NCBI GenBank assembly: GCA_965112735.1
Contig: OZ218951.1
Span: forward strand, 744,001 to 808,000
Source: Phaeosaccion multiseriatum
Taxonomy: Eukaryota > Protista > Ochrophyta, other classes
Direction: 5' to 3'
Length of the DNA stretch: 64,000 nucleotides
Under the pieces are notes generated by a model. It was not told the origin of the DNA. It did not search any database and saw only the letters and a list, made by a program, of their open reading frames with translations. Below are positions 23,691 to 45,415 of this stretch, piece by piece. Both the position numbers and the translations under genes were made by a program. How positions within the stretch are numbered: the stretch's first letter is position 1; every line of letters starts with the position of its first letter.

Positions 23691-24292
23691 ACTCGTGCCT
23701 GCGAGGAGCGAGGAGGGCCACCGCAGCAGTACCTGCAGCAGTTGGTGATACAACAGCAGCAGCAGCAGCATCAGCAGGAAACAAACCGGGGACGGAGTAG
23801 AAGGAGGAGGCGCTTCATCGGGGAAGACGCGCAGGGGTGGGTCAGGGGAGATGGAAGCGAAGGACACAGTGTCGCCCTCGCTCGTATTCCGAAACAACAA
23901 ACGCAGAAAGGTCTGAGATTCTCAGACGTTTCATTTTGCTCCTCCTCGCTCAATATCTCTCCTCCGTGCTTTCTGAAACGATCTTGAAACGTCTGGCTCA
24001 AACTGACAGCCGAACAAGAACGGGAGCCAAAGCAAAAACAAAAAGCATTAATCAACAACAAGAGGGGGACTGAAGGAAAGGAGGAGAAGGCTCGCTTGCC
24101 AAGTGCTCAACGCAGCCGGGCTGGTGCTGCCGACAGGGCGGTACGGGGAGGTAGAAGCAACCAAGGCAAGGATGGGAGATAGAGGAGAGCTTCTTGCAGT
24201 ACGTAATTGAGCGAAGAAGGCGTATTTCCGCAAAGTTCCACCGAGCACACGACCAGCAGAGACCAGGCCAGGCCAGTCTTGCAGCGCTCACC

Positions 24293-27200
24293 ATGGAGGT
24301 TGGGGTCGTTGTGACGGTTGTGGTGAAGAGTATATCAGCAATCATTGACCATGCAGAGCAGGTCAAATGCTTCCCCAAGCAGTGTAAGCGCATCGCCAAC
24401 CGGCTCAAGATGCTGGAGGAGCCTCTGCAGGCTCTCACCAGGGAAGGGGCTCACGAGGAGAGGTGTGAAGCCCTGCGCTTCCTGCTTACGCTGGTCCGGG
24501 AGATTGAGGACAAGCTCAGCAAGTATTCCGCTCCTCAGTCTTGGTGGAAGATGCACATGCGTATCAAGGCGCATACAGCCGTCTTTGCGGATTTCCACAG
24601 CCGCCTTAATGAATGCCTTCTACATCTCCAGCTGAGCGACAGGGTGAGGGCCAGCCTTGCGGCAGAGCAGGAAGAGGCGCACACTCAGAGGGACGAAGAC
24701 GAGGACATGACCAGATTGCTCCAAGATCTGGAGGTCATGAAGGAGAAGACGAGCATGATGGACGAGCGATACACGCAAGTGGTGGAGGCATTGAGGGCGA
24801 GTCGACTGCAGGCGGGGGAGAGGGTCTTGGGCTTCAAGGAGATCGACCTTTCCGATCTCGACTTTGATGAGAGCGGGGCGGGGTGTCTGGTGGGCCAGGG
24901 CAGCTTCGGGACTGTGAAAGTTGCCAAGTGGAGGAAAACGACGCCAGTGGCAGTGAAGCTGCTCACCGGTAATGGCGCGGCTCTGAGCACCAAGGAGCTG
25001 AAGGAGTTTCGCAACGAAGTCAAGGTCCACAACAGCCTGCGCCACGACTTCATCGTGCCTCTGTACGGCGCGTGCACAGTGGAGCCCACGCTGTGCGTGG
25101 TGATGGAGCTCGCTCCGGAGGGGAACTTGTACGAGTATCTGCAGATGCACGCCGCGTCGTGCGGCAGTGGGGAGCAGCAAGGAGGCCCAGACGCCCCTCC
25201 GTCGACGTGGGATGAGCGTGTGGCGATGCTGTACGACGGTGTGCGAGGCCTGGCCCACCTCCATGCGGAGGGCGTGCTGCACCGAGACGTCAAGAGCTTG
25301 AACTTCCTCGTGTACCCCAGCAACAGGGTCAAGGTGTGCGACTTTGGCATGGCCAAGGTAAGGGTGGCGGAGAAGAGGCAGCAGCAGACAGATCGTACAG
25401 GTTGTGCTCTCGGGGGCTGCCCTCCTCCTGCCCTCTTCCTCGCCTGTCTTCCTCTGACGCAGCAGCCACGCCCCCCCCCCCCCCTCCCCGCTTCTTGCTC
25501 GCTTAGATGAAGACAGGCAGCAGCTCCATGAGCACAGCTGGAGCAAAGTCGGTGGGGTCTTATCTTTGGATGGCTCCTGAGATTTATGATGAGGAGAAGG
25601 GTACACCTGCCACGGATGTGTACAGGTGAGGCAGAGAGGGAGGCGGCGTGTGGGTGAATGGCTGTATCTCTTTGCTTGCAAGCTGCCTGCGTAAGGAAGC
25701 TGCGTCAAAACTTGCTTTTGGGGTGAGGTGTGCCTCTCACTCTCTGTCGTACACACCCCCACGCCTGGCATGCCGAAGCAGTCGTTAAGGAGCCACCTCT
25801 CTGCCTCGGCGGACTGCCCCCAACGCACTGTGTCACTTCGTGTGGTCCACTGGAGCTCACACTCTTCGCTGTTTCTTCTTCTCCTTGCTCACTACTGCAC
25901 GTGCCTTCCTGCACAGCTTTGGCATGGTGATGTACGAGGTGCTGTCCTTCCAGCTTCCCTTCCAAGGACAGAGTCAGGCTCATGTATGTATGAGGGTGGC
26001 CGTGAAGCAGGAAAGGCCCCTCGTCCCGGAGACATGCGTGGTAGAGGACAAGCGCGTCGATGACCTCATGCGGCGTGCTGGCAGCAAGCCCCAGGTCAGC
26101 GACCCTCCAGCAGCGACGTCTCGCAAGCTTTGGGCGCCATAGTGGAGGAGAGAGGCGACCCACGTGGAGGTGGTGGCCGCTGGAGCCGCCCATCATCGCC
26201 TCGTCACCAACAAAGGGAGGAAAAGGAGGCGGATGCCCGAGCTTTTGGTGAAGCGAGCAAGTGGCCGGAGGAGGAGAGGAAGGATACGATCGCCAACAGT
26301 AACGCACCACCCCAAGGGCAAGTGGACTCTCCCTCTTCAGCATACCCCCCAACCGCACCCCCATCACCCTCTGGTACGGTACCCTCGTCCCAAGAGCAAG
26401 CAGCAGCGGCGTTGCCACCACCGACTCCAGCGGCAACAAAGAAGAAGAAGAAAAAGAAGAACAAGAACAAGGAGGAGGAGAAGCAGCAGAGCCCAGAAGA
26501 AGCATCAACGGACGAGGCGAAGAGGAACATCTCAAGCCTCATTGCTGGGCGGAAGTACGACCTCCTGGTGATGCTCCTGCACGAGAGCTACGATTGCGAG
26601 GGAGTTGGCGAAGTGACGAAGCACGAAGTGATGCAGCACGCCCTCGAGGCCATCGCGACCCTTCCTGGTCCGAGCAGCAGCTCCTCCGGTAGTGAGGGTC
26701 GAGGTGAGGCCTTGCTCCTTGCGCAGGCCGGGATGGACAAGGAAGTGGTTCGAGCACTATCGAAGCTCGCTCGGTCCGTGAACGTAGCACAAGCAGGGCT
26801 TGACGTTGTGACATACCTGGCCCGCGATGATGACGTCAGGGTCAGGCTCGGCGCGGAGGGTGCGTGCGAGGCTGTAACTGTGGTGATGACGAACCTGCTT
26901 TGCAGAGGTGTTCAGGAGCGAGCATTCAGGGCTATTGTAACTCTGAGCGGTGGAAACGAGGCCAACACCTTGAGATTCGGACAATCGGGTGCGTGCGAGA
27001 AAGTGTTGGCATCCATGGTGAACAACGCAGGGGACAGAGGGGTCCAAGAGCTGGCATGCAGAGCCGTTACCAATCTGAGCTTTGGAAACTTGCCCAACAG
27101 AAAGAGACTGGTCGATGCGGGTGCGGTCGAGGCAGCATTAGCGGCAATGGTGAAGTGCGAAGGGGACACAATTACCCAAGGGAATGCATGCACGGTTGTT

Positions 27201-29891
27201 GTGAATCTGGGGCTGGTGGAAACGGCCACCACCAGGAAGAGAGTGTCCAAAGCACTGATAACGACCATGCGAACTCACCTAACGGACAACGGGGTCCAAC
27301 AGTACGCATGCGCCATTGTTCGGCGACTCATCTCGGAAGGCCGCAGCACATACTTGGAGGCTTTGGGCGAGGAGGGTGCGTGTGAAGCCGTGGTGAGGTC
27401 CATGAGGACCCATGCAGGGGACAGAAAAGTCCAAGAGCAGGCATGCGGGGCTGTTTGGAGTCTGAGCGGTGGAAACGAGGCCAACAGGAAGAGACTGGGC
27501 GAGGCGGGTGCGTGCGAGGCGGTGGTGACGGCCATGGTGAAGCACGCAGAGGACATAAACGTCCAAAAGCAGGCATGCGGGGCTGTTTGGAGTCTGAGCG
27601 GTGGAAACGAGGCCAACAGGAAGAGACTGGGCGAGGCGGGTGCGTGCGAGGCGGTGGTGACGGCCATGGTGAAGCACGCAGAGGACAGAGGCGTCCAAGA
27701 GCAGGCATGCGGGGCTGTTTGGAATCTCAGCGCTGGAAACGAGGCCAACAAGAAGAGACTGGGCGAGGCGGGTGCGTGCGAGGCGGTGGTGACGGCCATG
27801 GTGAAGCACGCAGAGGACAGAAACGTCCAAGAGCAGGCATGCGGGGCTGTTTGGAATCTCAGCGCTGGAAACGAGGCCAACAAGAAGAGACTGGGCGAGG
27901 CGGGTGCGTGCGAGGCGGTGGTGACGGCCATGGTGAAGCACGCAGAGGACAGAAACGTCCAAAAGCAGGCATGCGGGGCTGTTTGGAGTCTGAGCTTTGG
28001 AAACGAGGCCAACAAGAAGAGACTGGGCGAGGCGGGTGCGTGCGAGGCGGTGGTGACGGCCATGGTGAACCACGCAGAGGACAGAAACGTCCAAAAGCAG
28101 GCATGCGGGGCTGTTTGGAGTCTGAGCTTTGGAAACGAGGCCAACAAGAAGAGACTGGGCGAGGCGGGTGCGTACGAGGCGGTGGTGACGGCCATGGTGA
28201 AGCACGCAGAGGACAGAAACGTCCAATACCAGGCATGCAGGGCTGTTTGGAATGTGAGCCGTGGAAACGAGGCCAACAGGAAGAGACTGGGCGAGGCGGG
28301 TGCGTGCGAGGCGGTGGTGACGGCCATGGTGAAGCACGCAGAGGACAGAAACGTCCAAGAGCAGGCATGCGGGGCTGTTTGGAATGTGAGCCGTGGAAAC
28401 GAGGCCAACAGGAAGAGACTGGGCGAGGCGGGTGCGTGCGAGGCGGTGGGGACGGCCATGGTGAAGCACGCAGGGGACAGAAAAGTCCAAGAGCAGGCAT
28501 GCGGGGCTGTTTGGAGTCTGACCATTGTAAACGAGGCCAACGGGAATAGACTGCGCAAGGCGGGTGCGTGCGAGGCGGTGGTGACGGCCATGGTGAAGCA
28601 CGCAGGGGACAGAGGCGTCCAAGAGCAGGCGTGCGGGGCTGTAAAAGAGCAGGCGTGCGGGGCTGGTTGGAGTGTGAACCGTGGAAACGCGGCCAACAGG
28701 AAGAGACTGGGCGAGGCGGGTGCGTGCGAGGCGGTGGTGACGGCCATGGTGAAGCACGCAGAGGACATAAACGTCCAAAAGCAGGCATGCGGGGCTGTTT
28801 GGAGTCTGAGCTTTGGAAACGAGGCCAACAAGAAGAGACTGGGCGAGGCGGGTGCGTGCGAGGCGGTGGTGACGGCCATGGTGAAGCACGCAGGGGACAC
28901 AGGAGCCCAAGAGCAGGCATGCGGGGCTGTTGTGAATCTGAGCTTTAGATACGAGGCCAACAAGAAGAGACTGGGCCAGGCGGGTGCTTGCGAGGCGGTG
29001 GTGACGGCCATGGTGAAGCACGCAGAGGACAGAAAAGTCCAAGAGCAGGCATGCGAGGCTGTTGTGGATCTGAGCGATAGAAACGAGCACAACAAGAAGA
29101 GACTGGGCGAGGCGGGTGCGTGCGAGGCGGTGGTGACGGCCATGGTGAAGCACCCAGAGGACAGAAAAGTCCAAAAGCAGGCAGGCGAGGCTGTTGTGAA
29201 ACTGAACGATGGAAACGAGGCCAACCAGAAGAGACTGGCCGAGGCGGTGGTGACGGCCATGGTGAAGCACGCAGAGGACAGAAAAGTCCAAGAGCAGGCA
29301 TGCAGGGCTGTTGTGAATCTGAGCTCTGGAAACGAGGCCAACGAGAAGAGACTGGGCGAGGCGGGTGCGTGCGAGGCGGTGGTGACGGCCATGGTGAAGC
29401 ACGCAGAGGACAGAGGCGTCCAAGAGCAGGCATGCAGGGCTGTTTGGAGTCTGAGCTTTGGAAACGAGGCCAACAAGAAGAGACTGGGCGAGGCGGGTGC
29501 GTGCGAGGCGGTGGTGACGGCCATGGTGAAGCACGCAGAGGACAGAAACGTCCAAAAGCAGGCATGCGGGGCTGTTTGGAGTCTGAGCGGTGGAAACGAG
29601 GCCAACAACAAGAGACTGGGCGAGGCGGGTGCGTGCGAGGCGGTGGTGACGGCCATGGTGAAGCACGCAGGGGACACAGGAGTCCAAGGGCAGGTATGCC
29701 GGGCTGTTTGGAGTCTGAGCACTGGTAATGAGGCCAACAAGATGAGACTGGGCGAGGCGGGTGCGACGGAGGCAGCATCGGCGGCGATGAAGCGCTACAG
29801 GTGGAACGGAGCATTCGAAGAACAGGCGAAGAGAATTCTGGAATGCAAGAGAGGGAGGATGCAGGCACTGAAGAAGCGACTGTTCAAGTAA
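24293..29891 (+). CDS. MLKL-like four-helix bundle + TKL-type protein kinase + armadillo-repeat array; exons 24293-25357, 25507-25625, 25917-29891, with a 1-nt frameshift at ~26075
   Basis: N-terminus AEQVKCFPKQCKRIANRLKMLEEPL...IEDKLSKYS...FADFHSRLNECLLHLQL resembles the MLKL N-terminal domain. Kinase motifs: GQGSFG, VAVK, EF.NEV, HRDVKSLN, DFG, GSYLWMAPE, DVYSFG, and CWQQAPGQRP after the frameshift. About 23 ARM repeats follow. Confidence 0.85.
27363..29747 (+). repeat. Coding tandem array: 18 near-identical 132-bp (44-aa) armadillo repeats
   Basis: Unit LGEAGACEAVVTAMVKHAEDxxVQxQACxAVxxLSxxNEANxKR. 18x132 + 24 (duplication) - 15 (deletion) accounts exactly for the span. Confidence 0.97.
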
Positions 29892-30432: not shown

Positions 30433-30558
30433 CATCAATCAAGCAATCGATTAGTCAATCAATAAATCAAGCAAAGACTACTCAATCAATCAACCAACCA
30501 ACCAACAAATCAGACAATTAACCAACCAACCAACCAACCAACCAATCAACCAATCAAG
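30433..30558. repeat. (CAAT/CCAA)n tetranucleotide microsatellite
   Basis: Runs of tcaa and ccaa units. Confidence 0.8.
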
Positions 30559-30562
30559 GACA

Positions 30563-32135
<1,573 letters not shown>

Positions 32136-41895: not shown

Positions 41896-44800
41896 GAGGT
41901 GTTCTGTCGAGGGGTGTGAGATGTATATTAGAGCTTATGGGCTCAGTATTGGAGCGCTCGAGGTAAGTTGTAACCATGTGTAGATGCGTGTATGTGTGGT
42001 ATTGATGGAGCGTGATGTGGAGGGGAAGAGGATGGTAAGGGTGGTAGAGTAGAGGATAATGGGGAATGAGAAGGGAGTGAAGGGGGGAGGGGGAGATGAA
42101 GGGGTGTGGGAAGGAGTGAGGTGGTGGAGGTGATATGTGAACTATCCTACTGTGGGTGGTGCGGGTGACAAGGCGTGACTAACTGTGGTTGCTATGCTGT
42201 GTGCTGATGGTCTCGCTGTCTGCTGGCTGGTGTACTCCTGCTCCTCAGGCGGCCGCTCCGTCGATGGCTCCCATGAGCCCCCAGTCGAGGGTTTCTGCTG
42301 CTTCGTGCTGCGTCATCGTGGCTCGAAGGAGGGTGCCATACCTGATCTCCCGCTGTGAGAGGGCGCGTTGAAGGGCGAGGGACAGTTGTTGGCGCAGGAG
42401 GCCCTTGATGGGGCCCGTGGCTGCCGCCGCTGCGGGGCCGAGCCCTCTTGATGCCTTGTGGATGGCCATCGCCTCGATGAGCTCGTCCGTTTGGTGGCCC
42501 AGTCTGCCGTACGTCTCGATTGCAATGCACTTCAGGGTTGAAGTCCCGGGCAGAAAACTGCCCAGATAGTGTGTGCGCTTGCGTTCTTCGGCGGCGGCTG
42601 CTGCGTGGCCTGGCGTGGTGGAGGCCCGTCCCACGTGGGTGGGGGCGGTGGGGTTGGTGACGGTGATGTCGCAGAGGAGGTTTCTCCGCAGGGGTGCGTC
42701 CGCTCCCGGGAAGCTACCTGCGGGATAGGTCAGGTCCATGCGTAGGTCTCGGCCTGCTCGGGTGCCCGTGGGGCCGTCGAAGCAGGTCTGGTCCTCTACT
42801 CGTGCTCCTCCAATGCCCACGCTGTGCATCATCCTCCCGAAGGCCTTGACGAGGAGGTGGTGTGTGTGGTTGTGGAGGCCGGTGCGGGGGCAGATGGTGG
42901 CGTGGGTAGTGCTTGCCGTGCGGGCGCAGCCTGTGCCGAGGCAGGGTGGGGGCGGGTCCGCGTATGGCGTGTTGACACCGAGGTTGCGACGAAGGGCCAT
43001 GGTCCATTCTGCGGGGGCCATGGTGTTGTGGCCGTGGGGGAGCGCTCCGAGGAAGGCCATGGCGCCCCTTCCTCGCTGTGAGTGGAGTCGGGCTGTTGCC
43101 ATTTCCTGTGTCTCCTCTCCCCTCTGTACCTCTGCCGGTGTGACGTCGATGGTGGCGATGCTCTGCGTCAGCTCCTCATGGCGGCGTTTGTGGATGAAGG
43201 TGGTGAGGGCCTTCTGGACGCCGTGGGTCGGTTGACGGCCTGCCTGATGGCTCCTGCGCACGTTGCGTCGCGCTGTGTCCTGGGCTTGGTGGTCAGGCGG
43301 CTCGAGTACGCGTGAGCGGGCCTCGTCGAACTGTGCCTGACCCACTGCTTGGATGAGGGGGGCCTCAGGGACCCCCTCCTCGTGCAGGAGGTTGACGCTG
43401 TCGGCGATGCTCTTGAGGGCTCCGTTGGTGAACAGCTGGTCCGGTAGGGCGCTCTCTTGGGAGCCTTCCCGGCGTGCGGTGCGGCTGAGCAGGGGGGGGA
43501 GGGTGAGCATCTTGTTGCCAAGGTATGCTGCTGGGGCGATGTCGTGGAGGCTGGTGAGGCCGAGGCCACCGAAGCGCCGTGCCGTATGCATTTGTAGGCG
43601 CTGTGTCTCCGTCCATGGCTCCTCGTGTGCATCTGCGGCCTGCTCCAGAGGGGGGGCATCGGGGAGTCGCATGATGTGGGCCATTGTCGCTCTGTTGGTG
43701 CGGTCTGCCCTGCTGCCGAGGGCGCGTCGGAAGATGGAGGGGTCAATGGCTCTCGCCAGGTGTGTGAGCCTGGCTGGGAGGCATTGGAGGAGGACGAGGG
43801 TGGCCGCCTGGGTGTTGTCCCACTCGCTGCAGTGTTTGGCGAGTTGGAGGTAGCCCCTGGGGTCTTCTTGGCCGAGGATGTTGCGGAGGTACTCTTCGAT
43901 GTACTCCTCCGTGCCGACGGGGATGCCGGCTACCACGGTACCCTCGGTGGCAAGTGTGGCGCCCTGCCGTTGGGCGTGGTCCCTGTCAGCCTGTGTTGGC
44001 TGCTTGCCTTTGCCCATGAGGTAAACCGTTTTCCTCTCGTTGAACTCGAGGCCCAAGCCTCGGAATTGGGCTTGGAGATGGGCATGGCGTGGGGCGTAGG
44101 TCTGTAGGGGTGCGTCGGGTTCCAGCTGGTCCATGAGGTCGTCTGCGTAGGCGGAGATGGTGGGGCGGTTCGCTGCGGTGTCGGCTGTGTTCTGAACTTT
44201 CAGCACTGGGTGGATGGCGGCTGCGAACATGAGAGGCCCTTCTGGTGCTCCTTGGTTGACTCCGGAGCTCTGGTGGATGGTCTGGGTGCCGTCTGGTGTG
44301 AGGGCGTTGTGGGCGGAGGCGTGGGAGAGGCTGGCGATGGCGTAGTTGATGCCTGCTGGGTCGATGGTAGGGAGTGCGCCTGAGGCTAGGACGCCTCTGG
44401 CACGCGACACGCGGGTGTAGGCCTTGGTGATGTCCTGCAGCACGACGGTTTTGCCGGCATCGTGCGCTAGCTGGGCTGCTGCGGCGTGTGTCTCCCCTCC
44501 GCCTCTGACCGCTACCGCTAGCTGTCCTGCGCTTCTGAGCTCTGGGCCCACCCTGTCCGCGATGAGCTTCATGTGACAGCTCTCCACGAGGCTGCGGTAG
44601 AGGTTGGGGGATGTCACAGGACGCGCTTTCTCGCCGAGGGCTGCGGCGCTGGTGCTGAACCAACGTTTGGCGAGCTGTGGAGGCAGTGGAGTGTCCCCCG
44701 TTCGGAGCAGCTCGTAGGTGTCAGTCAGAGCCTCCACGATTGCGTACTCCTGGGGGCTGTCCGGGGGGTACTTGACGTGGCTCGCCCTGCGCCCGTCTGC

Positions 44801-45415
44801 TCCTTGGCCCTTCCAGAAGTTGACCCTCCGGTAGGTCAGCAGCATGGCTGTGCTGATCTCCTCTCTGGTGACGTCGTTGCCATTCTCGGGGTGCTCCTGC
44901 AACTGGGTTCTGGCGTACTCCCTGGCTGCTGCTGCTGCTGTGCTAATCTCCTCGAGGCTCTCGTCTACGTGCGCTTGCTGGAGGCGTCTGAACGTCTCGT
45001 GTGAGGGGGGGAGGTGGCCGTCTCTGCTCTTTGTGCTGAGCCTCGCGGCGGCCTTGTGCAGGCCTCCGGGTTTGGTGAGCAGGTGGGCGCAGGTTTCTCT
45101 CCGTCGCTCCTCTGTCTGTGCCTGTGCTGGGGGTGGTGGGCGGCGTGCGTGTGCTGTGGCTATCGCTGCTTGTGCGAGTGGGGCGATGTCGAGGTCGAGG
45201 ACCATCTGTATCCGCTGCTGGCGGCTGTAGGCTCCGTCTTTAGAGAAGAGCATGGCAGGGAGGAGGTGGTGGAAGACATCCCATGCCAGAAGGGTGTGGA
45301 GGGTGGCGTCGGTGGGGCCGTTCTTGTGGGCCCTCAGCGCCCTGTTCCAGTTGTTGAGCGCTCTTTGCTGTAAGCTGATAAGGGGTGTGAGAAGCGGCAG
45401 CGGCAGGGAGGATTA
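41896..45415 (-). mobile_element. Non-LTR retrotransposon with restriction-like endonuclease (CRE-like clade), apparently 5'-truncated
   Basis: Intronless RT-ZnK-RLE ORF plus a ~350 bp 3' UTR. The ORF stays open upstream of the first ATG to a stop at ~45413. Confidence 0.88.
42245..45253 (-). CDS. Retrotransposon polyprotein: reverse transcriptase + CCHC knuckle + PD-(D/E)xK restriction-like endonuclease
   Basis: QLAVAVRGG, QDITKAYTRVSR, GVNQGAPEGPLMF, AYADDL, GGLGL, C..C..HATIC..HNHTH, RMDL..CDITV..EERKRTHY..AIETYGRLG. Confidence 0.92.
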   Translation of the reverse strand: MLFSKDGAYSRQQRIQMVLDLDIAPLAQAAIATAHARRPPPPAQAQTEERRRETCAHLLTKPGGLHKAAARLSTKSRDGHLPPSHETFRRLQQAHVDESLEEISTAAAAAREYARTQLQEHPENGNDVTREEISTAMLLTYRRVNFWKGQGADGRRASHVKYPPDSPQEYAIVEALTDTYELLRTGDTPLPPQLAKRWFSTSAAALGEKARPVTSPNLYRSLVESCHMKLIADRVGPELRSAGQLAVAVRGGGETHAAAAQLAHDAGKTVVLQDITKAYTRVSRARGVLASGALPTIDPAGINYAIASLSHASAHNALTPDGTQTIHQSSGVNQGAPEGPLMFAAAIHPVLKVQNTADTAANRPTISAYADDLMDQLEPDAPLQTYAPRHAHLQAQFRGLGLEFNERKTVYLMGKGKQPTQADRDHAQRQGATLATEGTVVAGIPVGTEEYIEEYLRNILGQEDPRGYLQLAKHCSEWDNTQAATLVLLQCLPARLTHLARAIDPSIFRRALGSRADRTNRATMAHIMRLPDAPPLEQAADAHEEPWTETQRLQMHTARRFGGLGLTSLHDIAPAAYLGNKMLTLPPLLSRTARREGSQESALPDQLFTNGALKSIADSVNLLHEEGVPEAPLIQAVGQAQFDEARSRVLEPPDHQAQDTARRNVRRSHQAGRQPTHGVQKALTTFIHKRRHEELTQSIATIDVTPAEVQRGEETQEMATARLHSQRGRGAMAFLGALPHGHNTMAPAEWTMALRRNLGVNTPYADPPPPCLGTGCARTASTTHATICPRTGLHNHTHHLLVKAFGRMMHSVGIGGARVEDQTCFDGPTGTRAGRDLRMDLTYPAGSFPGADAPLRRNLLCDITVTNPTAPTHVGRASTTPGHAAAAAEERKRTHYLGSFLPGTSTLKCIAIETYGRLGHQTDELIEAMAIHKASRGLGPAAAAATGPIKGLLRQQLSLALQRALSQREIRYGTLLRATMTQHEAAETLDWGLMGAIDGAAA

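Follow-up and report, generated by a model that had tools for sequence, protein, structure and literature searches.

The locus raises the question why eighteen tandem armadillo (ARM) repeats, which are almost identical down to their silent sites, differ from each other at a handful of codons, and whether this variation reflects selection on a binding surface, as was proposed in a sequence-only reading of the 64,000-nucleotide stretch of DNA that was analysed (the window). We consider it probable that the array is a highly internally conserved (HIC) ARM domain under diversifying selection on one face of the third helix (H3), located at the C-terminus of a protein of an MLKL_N-kinase-ARM family of which this copy appears freshly broken. 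In fungi, fast-evolving non-self sensors are recognised by near-identical repeats in which a few surface codons are positively selected. If our reading is true, this fungal-type evolutionary solution would extend to a new fold, a new lineage and a new signalling chassis (an MLKL-type bundle with a live kinase), and the family would provide candidates for receptors of immunity or cell death in algae, where innate immunity is poorly known.

The repeats were delimited by TRF, which reports a period of 132 nt in 18.1 copies at 27364-29765, and by the ORF at 26130-29891 on the forward strand, which from 27363 on reads as 18 units of 44 amino acids in an ARM frame uninterrupted by stops over 1,253 codons. 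Codon p of a regular unit starting at S lies at position S+3(p-1), and the array and its borders are composed as follows.

26640-27362, forward strand: about five divergent, non-homogenised ARM repeats 5' of the array (translation, Pfam and AF2 helix pattern)
27363-29747, forward strand: ARM array of 18 tandem units, 132 nt or 44 codons each
28644-28667, forward strand: in-frame duplication of 8 codons within H3 of unit 10, with pLDDT <50 in the long AF2 model
29235-29351, forward strand: unit 15, of 39 codons, with the H1-H2 turn (unit positions 2-6, 5 codons) deleted
29748-29891, forward strand: degenerate last unit (C-terminal cap) and stop codon

The array matches the Pfam Arm profile (Armadillo repeat, PF00514) with an E-value of 2.7e-73 in 8 separate stretches, both Arm and ARM_ARMC5 are matched within 26130-27500, and in a phmmer search against the PDB designed ARM proteins match the array with an E-value of 1.7e-35. 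Mean pairwise identity between units amounts to 90.5% at the DNA and 81% at the protein level. That the framework is nearly invariant, synonymous sites included, was already suggested by the sequence-only reading and is confirmed: a 49-nt framework string is exact in 10 of the 18 units and carries 1-2 mismatches in 6 more, a 29-nt framework core is found 17 times compared to 0 expected matches, and the entire array contains only 13 synonymous variants. Similarity is greatest among interior units, and units 1 and 18 at the edges diverge most. Near-identity of this kind, silent sites included, is what recent duplication of units and unequal exchange between them, i.e. concerted evolution, would produce.

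Short-read assemblies are known to get such arrays wrong (PMC12222747), and a collapse or chimera of paralogous arrays would turn the 'within-gene' variation into variation between genes. The array is indeed spanned by none of the read contigs, several joints skip 428-681 nt and the depth summed over framework bins reaches very high values. We nevertheless judge such an artefact very unlikely, as 83% of the sampled 31-mers of the gene were found in the reads of the sample and the flanks of the array were confirmed at single-copy depth in read contigs. Moreover, whichever order they have, the units are present in the genome, and neither the per-site pattern nor the dN/dS result depends on it. 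Run X6, the sole run of another sample, contains framework fragments only, and the gene is present in none of the RNA runs.

A per-codon table of the units identifies nine hypervariable codons and three positions with weaker variation.

Unit position 21: R/I/T
Unit position 22: N/K/G
Unit position 25: E/K/Y/G
Unit position 29: G/R/E (G in 12 units, R in 4, E in 2)
Unit position 32: W/V
Unit position 33: S/N/D/K (S in 10 units, N in 6, D in 1, K in 1)
Unit position 36: 8 residues, every codon being NNT
Unit position 37: G/R/V
Unit position 42: 6 residues
Unit positions 19, 34 and 35: weaker variation

The positions at which substitutions had been reported to cluster agree with this table. Together the nine codons, 27 of the 132 nt, account for 60% of the pairwise nucleotide differences, and within them diversity at codon positions 1 and 2 is 3.4 times that at position 3. 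Unit variants present in the reads, which belong to other copies, differ at codons 32, 33, 36 and 37 too. Diversity that is so extremely localised might suggest a diversity-generating mechanism aimed at certain codons, all the more as the window contains a reverse-transcriptase ORF (42245-45253). However, the variants display neither a bias in the base changed nor adenine specificity, and DGR-like mutagenesis was rejected on the former ground; no template repeat was seen, and the ORF, which lies 12 kb off and has a general Pfam RVT_1 match only, is read as a retroelement. To our knowledge, diversity-generating systems of this type are confined to prokaryotes and their viruses, and we hold their involvement here to be extremely improbable.

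In ARM solenoids, the exposed face of H3 lines the ligand groove. DSSP assignment of two AF2 models of modest confidence (pLDDT 57 and 70) assigns unit positions 39-45 to H1, 6-17 to H2 and 21-35 to H3, and thus yields the three helices per unit of an ARM-type solenoid. Nearly all of the top 50 Foldseek matches are designed ARM proteins or importin-alpha, next to one APC ARM chain, with a TM-score of only about 0.47. Over positions 21-36 the entropy spectrum has its maximum at exactly 100 degrees per residue, with a normalised variability moment of 0.56 (permutation P 0.001) that lies at about 170 degrees to the hydrophobic moment. The substitutions are therefore concentrated on one helical face, as had been claimed, and this face is opposite to the hydrophobic side of H3. 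Aligned with designed ARM proteins (dArmRP), the variable sites correspond to dArmRP positions 25, 26, 29, 33, 36, 37, 40 and 41, which comprise the groove and pocket positions 29, 33, 36/37 and 40/41, and unit position 42 may equal dArmRP position 4, within the binding surface. In the papers searched, the dArmRP positions documented as part of the peptide pocket are 29, 30 and 33 (PMC4756613, PMC11228518). The variable residues are thus neither buried nor convex, in that they occupy the non-hydrophobic H3 face and align with the peptide groove of dArmRP and importin-alpha, their placement in a 'concave groove' deriving from sequence alignment to solved ARM proteins rather than from coordinates.

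To examine selection we used our own implementation of the codon models M0, M1a and M2a. M0 gives an omega of 2.3 for the array units, and M2a is preferred over M1a with an LRT of 60.9 (p 6e-14, omega2 about 11), although exchange between units breaks the single-tree assumption of these models and inflates their LRTs; the unit tree is poorly supported, with 23-53% at many nodes. The outcome is robust to F1x4 codon frequencies and to the omission of units 1, 10 and 15 (LRT 45.7), after which all nine positions have a posterior >0.95. Analysed on a separate tree, codons 19-44 yield an LRT of 37, compared to a non-significant 2.8 for codons 1-18. Positions 22 and 36 alone reach significance in all analyses, and 21, 25, 29, 32, 33, 37 and 42 reach it in some. 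In tree-free tests, for which the site sets were picked after inspection of the data, piN of the H3 face is 0.30 compared to an array piS of 0.05 (ratio 5.8, bootstrap CI 3.1-11.4; piS among units 0.03-0.05), and a minimum-change test gives P 0.0016 for the groove set and P 8e-5 for position 36 alone. Both approaches bear out the expectation that dN/dS exceeds 1 at the variable codons. In the remainder of the unit, framework and other polar positions alike, piN/piS is about 0.9-1.4, and this value of around 1 implies that the invariance of the units outside the H3 face is due to recency and not to constraint.

Relaxed constraint might by itself generate a comparable picture if, following a recent amplification, exposed H3 residues tolerated substitution and the core did not. 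Surface positions differ among the repeats of every ARM protein, most single sites are individually non-significant in the tree-free test, and in the older array of Phaeothamnion the H3-face piN of 0.38 is not above piS (0.39-0.57). Neutrality, however, caps piN at piS, whereas the H3 face reaches 5.8-9.4 times the array piS with a bootstrap that is never at 1. Heterozygosity is 0.48 on the H3 face compared to 0.11 at the other polar positions of H1, H2 and loops, which is an approximately fourfold difference, and the 8 codons found at position 36 all end in T. We consequently deem relaxed constraint an unlikely cause and favour diversifying selection on the H3-face codons. Selection for amino-acid change would concentrate the diversity on the solvent-exposed H3 face, and the selected sites fall on the predicted binding surface.

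Whether this surface binds a ligand in the manner of known ARM proteins is more doubtful. Designed ARM proteins and importin-alpha are the best matches in sequence and fold and share the three-helix unit, but compared to dArmRP the unit here is 44 residues long and carries an insert of 2 residues behind H2, its Trp precedes the Asn position by one residue (unit position 32) instead of four, and the equivalent of E30 is an invariant Gln. The equivalent of the backbone-binding Asn37 of dArmRP and importin-alpha (unit position 33) is variable, with N in 6 of the 18 units, which makes a dArmRP-like binding mode doubtful. The equivalent of Trp33 of peptide-binding ARM proteins is unit position 29, with G, R or E. 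The proposal of diversifying selection on a ligand-binding surface is supported in part: it stands as far as dN/dS and the exposed face are concerned, while a combinatorial specificity code, with one repeat for one residue, stays conjectural. TALE repeats are likewise near-identical tandem helical units that vary at few fixed positions, but they have a different fold, bind DNA and obey a proven code of one repeat for one base, compared to 9 variable positions per unit here; the likeness is an analogy only.

Upstream of the array, the following parts of the gene were recognised, for which a GT donor at 25401 and putative introns at 25401-25516 and 25626-25916 are suggested by splice-site reading.

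24290-25400, forward strand: exon 1, with MLKL_N, the kinase N-lobe and the catalytic core up to DFG (Pfam, translation and tblastn of P0080)
about 24332-24706, forward strand: MLKL_N four-helix bundle (PF22215, E 2.7e-12, 46.8 bits with a cut-off of 27)
25517-25625, forward strand: putative exon 2, which holds the activation segment with WMAPE and has DVY at its end (translation and splice-site reading)
25917-26075, forward strand: first part of exon 3, kinase C-lobe from SFGMVMYEVL to LMRR, in the kinase frame (weak Pfam kinase match and tblastn)
26074-26076, forward strand: frameshift site, one base missing compared to sister copies and a related strain (tblastn and read contigs)
26076-26640, forward strand: kinase end with CWQQAPGQRP in the ARM frame, followed by a Pro/Ser/Lys-rich low-complexity linker

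Exon 1 matches the Pfam Pkinase profile with an E-value of 8.6e-29, and the motifs VAVK, HRDVKSLN, DFG and APE are all in place in the translation, which indicates an active-type kinase and not the pseudokinase of MLKL-like proteins. A NACHT or NB-ARC domain was not found, as Pfam gives MLKL_N, kinase and ARM only. The combination of MLKL_N, kinase and ARM also occurs in P0080 of Phaeothamnion confervicola and in the JGI protein P0026; the continuous frame through bundle, kinase and ARM repeats that characterises this family is interrupted here. By tblastn, the first part of exon 3 matches residues 375-427 of P0080 in frame +1, and between 26075 and 26076 the homology jumps to frame +3; the kinase frame then terminates at a TAG at 26140-26142. 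Behind 26074 an extra A is present in all contigs of run X5 and in contigs at 1.7-1.8x locus depth, and it is lacking in contigs at locus depth. The copy thus has a derived 1-nt deletion near 26075, in the kinase C-lobe, by which the array falls out of the kinase frame and, as assembled, is no longer co-translated with bundle and kinase. The earlier reading did not mention this break between kinase and array.

With its frameshift and two disruptive in-frame indels, the gene copy may lack function now. One could argue that the array is hence a minisatellite in a pseudogene, diversified by slippage shuffling or by gene conversion with functional paralogues as donors, and uninformative on the locus. 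This would agree with the frameshift at 26074-26076 and the stop at 26140, with the 8-codon duplication and the 5-codon deletion inside units, with the framework piN/piS of about 1, and with the extra copies and alternative unit junctions seen in short read contigs. The ARM frame is nevertheless still open over its full length, so any decay must be very recent, and the site pattern needs selection somewhere in the family, which changes where selection acted and not whether it did. We regard the minisatellite explanation as rather unlikely, and under the preferred reading of a selected HIC ARM domain the copy is probably a very young pseudogene in which the selection footprint of its family is still visible. 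Since the copy appears freshly broken, this locus is itself of lesser value.

The closest known pattern is that of the HIC WD40, ANK and TPR repeats of fungal NLRs (HET-E, HET-D and the NWD family; PMC4986451, PMC12222747). In these as in the present array, concerted evolution keeps the units near-identical, also in DNA, each unit has a handful of positively selected hypervariable codons on the predicted binding surface, and the repeats are C-terminal in a multidomain protein with a cell-death-type N-terminal domain. The comparison with HET-E made earlier is apt (PMC4986451). Inter-repeat identity is high including silent sites and few codons are positively selected (M2a LRT 37-61), with the unit protein identity of 81% slightly below the 85% threshold applied to fungi. 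Conversely, ARM is a repeat type unreported in those fungal surveys (PMC4986451, PMC12222747), the organism is alga-like with its best relatives among ochrophyte stramenopiles, and the chassis consists of MLKL_N and a kinase without NACHT or NB-ARC. The pattern is thus known from fungal NLRs, and what is new is its occurrence in ARM repeats, in an alga and in a receptor that lacks a NOD domain. An MLKL-type four-helix bundle followed by a kinase is shared with wheat Pm13 (PMC10951266) and with animal and plant MLKL. Pm13 has its catalytic motifs, as here, whereas animal and Arabidopsis MLKL are pseudokinases; in contrast to the present gene, Pm13 and the MLKLs are without a C-terminal repeat array, and the kinase C-lobe is frameshifted in this copy.

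In searches for protein relatives, in a collection without the proteins of this genome, the best matches were 35-43% identical, with Phaeothamnion, Tribonema and Ectocarpus as best homologues by name, and no array with near-identical units of this type appeared among them. A prenyltransferase gene next to the locus yielded no useful taxonomic signal. In metagenome contigs, an exact search with the framework DNA found nothing, and a six-unit protein-guided scan returned 29 pattern matches of which 0 were confirmed. MLKL_N-kinase proteins elsewhere end C-terminally in LRR or Sel1, which fits a swappable sensor module. In the family, the array would most likely serve as a variable sensor for ligands, with the kinase and the bundle under its control, and it is in this sense that we infer that it binds a ligand, works as a sensor and takes part in immunity or cell death. 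More tentatively, and with considerable doubt, there might be a family of algal NOD-less single-chain receptors, in ochrophytes and others, in which an executioner bundle of MLKL type and an active kinase are joined to an ARM sensor diversified by unit shuffling and positive selection in the groove. Such receptors could recognise extended peptides in a modular way, the hypervariable residues of each unit deciding which short ligand stretch it is specific for, and would be convergent with fungal HIC NLRs. For protein engineering, arrays of natural origin with variation at dArmRP pocket positions could reveal which combinations of groove residues are tolerated in evolution. A TIR-like N-terminus noticed by eye in the Pycnococcus protein P0054 was dropped, as Pfam gave no match. 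An H3-face excess, although weaker, is also displayed by the ARM arrays of Pycnococcus (0.36 compared to a piS of 0.15) and Diacronema (0.35 compared to a piS of 0.19).

In P. multiseriatum, an array of 18 tandem ARM units evolves in concert and carries an excess of amino-acid change on the exposed face of the third helix (H3) of the unit, and in its family an MLKL-type bundle and a kinase of the active type are linked to such an array. The window (G+C about 59%, genes spliced) is eukaryotic, and the neighbouring genes are an ordinary set of a prenyltransferase, a UCH peptidase, a retroelement reverse transcriptase and a radical SAM protein. An ORF of 1,002 amino acids on the reverse strand (42245-45253) has a reverse-transcriptase domain (RVT_1, E 3.6e-7) and was taken as a retroelement. 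Shortly 3' of the gene lie long (AGGG)n and (ATCA/CAAC)n microsatellites, at 31499-31865 and 30434-30557. The following features were mapped at the locus.

24290-25400, forward: exon 1, MLKL_N four-helix bundle and kinase (Pfam and translation)
25401-25516 and 25626-25916, forward: two putative introns (frame and splice-site reading)
26130-29891, forward: ARM ORF of 1,253 residues (translation)
N-terminal part of ORF 26130-29891, forward: about five divergent ARM repeats preceding the array (translation)
27363-29747, forward: array of 18 units in tandem, each with 44 codons in 132 nt (repeat finding and translation)
28644-28667, forward: 8-codon in-frame duplication within helix 3 of unit 10 (translation)
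29235-29351, forward: unit 15, with five codons missing at the H1-H2 turn (translation)
directly after the array, forward: degenerate capping unit (translation)

Pfam identifies the array as Arm (E 2.7e-73), and the MLKL_N match of exon 1 (E 2.7e-12) exceeds the curated Pfam cut-off. The kinase motifs VAVK, HRD and DFG are intact in the translation of 24290-25400, and we infer from the sequence that one intron separates exon 1 from the APE segment and the other the APE segment from the C-lobe.

The sequence-only reading had described a near-invariant framework interrupted by a set of variable codons, and both descriptions hold. Ten units match the 49-nt framework exactly and 6 others with at most two mismatches, its 29-nt core occurs 17 times against 0 expected, and the entire array contains only 13 synonymous variants at a mean pairwise identity between units of 90.5% (DNA) and 81% (protein). 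A per-codon table reproduced the listed variable positions (21, 22, 25, 29, 32, 33, 36, 37 and 42) and also showed positions 19, 34 and 35 to vary more weakly. These nine main codons make up 20% of the unit, yet account for 60% of all pairwise differences, and within them diversity at codon positions 1 and 2 is 3.4 times that at position 3. At position 36, eight residues are specified by eight codons that all (8/8) end in T, and 17 of the 18 units have a distinct nine-position combination. Units 1 and 18 at the edges are the most divergent, as homogenisation of the interior by unequal exchange would predict. DGR-like mutagenesis as a source of the variants is argued against by variant bases that show no bias by consensus base.

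Selection on the codons was assessed with our own Goldman-Yang type likelihood over a unit tree built with IQ-TREE, from a small data set of 18 units and 44 codons. Across the 18 units M0 gave an omega of 2.3, and M2a was preferred to M1a (LRT 60.9, p 6e-14) with 14% of sites at an omega of about 11 and posteriors above 0.9 at positions 21, 22, 33, 36 and 42. Without units 1, 10 and 15 the LRT was 45.7 and all nine positions of the earlier list exceeded 0.95, while F1x4 codon frequencies gave an LRT of 48.3. When each part of the unit was given its own tree, codons 19-44 yielded an LRT of 37.1 (positions 22 and 36) and codons 1-18 a non-significant 2.8. Because units exchange sequence, the single-tree assumption of these models does not hold, and tree-free tests were added, with site sets picked after the data had been seen. 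Array-wide piN/piS was 2.1 (3.2 without unit 1), and the H3-face piN of 0.30 against an array piS of 0.05 corresponds to a ratio of 5.8 (CI 3.1-11.4, bootstrap over codons), or 9.4 (CI 4.4-24) without unit 1. In a minimum-change count the groove set exceeded the array-wide synonymous rate (P 0.0016; without unit 1 P 5e-5; position 36 alone P 8e-5). H3-face diversity is thus several-fold above the neutral limit, and the diversifying selection proposed at the variable codons is favoured by codon models and tree-free ratios alike. The remainder of the unit has a piN/piS of about 0.9-1.4, and therefore the invariance of the framework reflects young or homogenised units and not constraint.

Two AlphaFold models of modest confidence (a long one with pLDDT 57 and a six-unit one with pLDDT 70 and pTM 0.64) show the same regular pattern of helices, with H2 at unit positions 6-17, H3 at 21-35 and H1 at 39-45. 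Taken over positions 21-36, per-site entropy has its Fourier peak at exactly 100 degrees per residue, with a normalised moment of 0.56 (permutation P 0.001), confirming that the variable codons share a single helical face. Since the direction of variability lies about 170 degrees off the hydrophobic moment, this is the exposed face of H3. Mean heterozygosity is 0.48 on this face vs 0.11 at polar control positions of H1, H2 and the loops, and thus the pattern is not mere surface variability. In ARM solenoids the concave groove is lined by H3 (Huber 1997, Conti 1998). By phmmer against the PDB, the unit aligns to designed ARM proteins (dArmRPs; E 1.7e-35) and importin-alpha, with a 2-residue insert needed after H2 in the unit, and Foldseek is concordant. 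In this register positions 25, 26 and 29 correspond to dArmRP 29, 30 and 33, positions 32 and 33 to 36 and 37, and positions 36 and 37 to 40 and 41. Glu30 and Trp33 belong to the dArmRP peptide-binding site, with Leu32, Thr34 and Ile38 buried (PMC4756613), and selected pockets are made by residues 29, 30 and 33 (PMC11228518). Of the proposed placement in the groove, the exposed H3 face stands, whereas the groove itself rests on alignment and helix geometry, by which the variable residues would line it.

Three further algal ARM arrays show an effect in the same direction, with H3-face piN, array piS and core piN of 0.36, 0.15 and 0.05 in Pycnococcus, 0.35, 0.19 and 0.09 in Diacronema, and 0.38, 0.39 and 0.12 in Phaeothamnion, where H3-face piN is not in excess of piS. 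The same evolutionary pattern, in which repeats of high internal conservation evolve in concert and the concave face is under positive selection, is known from fungal NLRs, in their WD40, ANK and TPR repeats (PMC4986451, PMC12222747). Searches of the open literature found no account of it in ARM repeats, in algae or on an MLKL_N-kinase chassis. The nearest algal parallel would be the brown-algal LRR and TPR receptor candidates of Ectocarpus with exon shuffling; the likeness to TALE repeats that had been suggested we judge superficial.

The nearest protein of the same architecture (MLKL_N, kinase and ARM) is P0080 of Phaeothamnion confervicola, which aligns in the kinase frame through LMRR (up to 26075) and from the next residue in the ARM frame, beginning at a CW...RP motif (26076 onward). 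The kinase frame terminates at a TAG (26140-26142) and the ARM ORF runs on in another frame. Read contigs at single-copy depth have no extra A behind 26074, whereas a variant at 1.7-1.8x locus depth has it together with four substitutions close by, as do, for the A, all contigs of a relative about 92% identical (X5, a read run from another sample); the 1-nt deletion in the kinase C-lobe is therefore a derived change truly present in the sample. In the assembly it uncouples the array from bundle and kinase. The break must be recent, given an ARM frame still open across 1,253 codons, and the window copy is probably a very young pseudogene whose selection footprint probably arose while it, or its family donors, were functional.

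Alternative contigs of the kinase region (25037-25271 and 26056-26096; about 1.7-1.8x locus depth, 10 substitutions in 235 nt) fit at least two further family members in the genome. Loose ends and variant letters in the reads reveal ARM units belonging to other copies, with differences at codons 32, 33, 36 and 37. At 28612-29749, contigs skip 428-681 nt between the units they join and carry short foreign inserts; they represent either further arrays of the family or a different order of units, and the assembled order is provisional.

The groove would bind a variable ligand, and new specificities may arise as units duplicate and exchange and as groove codons acquire point substitutions. Ligand binding might then release or activate the kinase and bundle module, in parallel to fungal, plant and animal NLRs, in which repeat domains gate the receptor, and to Pm13, an MLKL_NTD-kinase protein conferring resistance (PMC10951266). 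A binding mode copying importin-alpha or dArmRPs is unlikely, because the position of the backbone-binding Asn is variable in these units and the Trp ladder is shifted. The full architecture also occurs in the JGI protein P0026, with a weak MLKL_N match in Diacronema lutheri P0110, and Hondaea P0059 combines kinase and ARM. When exon 1 was run in a full HMMER scan, it recovered proteins in which an MLKL_N-kinase module is followed by LRR, Sel1 or SH3 or by no C-terminal domain, and the module seems to be a chassis with exchangeable C-terminal modules of several repeat types. P0131, P0167, P0204, P0270 and P0134 carry LRR, Sel1 or SH3 C-termini and not ARM.

In Pycnococcus provasolii (nucleotide record L002, 4795-5586), P0054 has six ARM units of 132 nt with 86% DNA identity, preceded by an N-terminal region in which Pfam found no match. 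One ARM unit of D. lutheri P0110 (L003, residues 723-774) contains an in-frame H3 duplication (VQAGVQEQ) much like that of unit 10 in the window, and slippage inside H3 may recur in such arrays.
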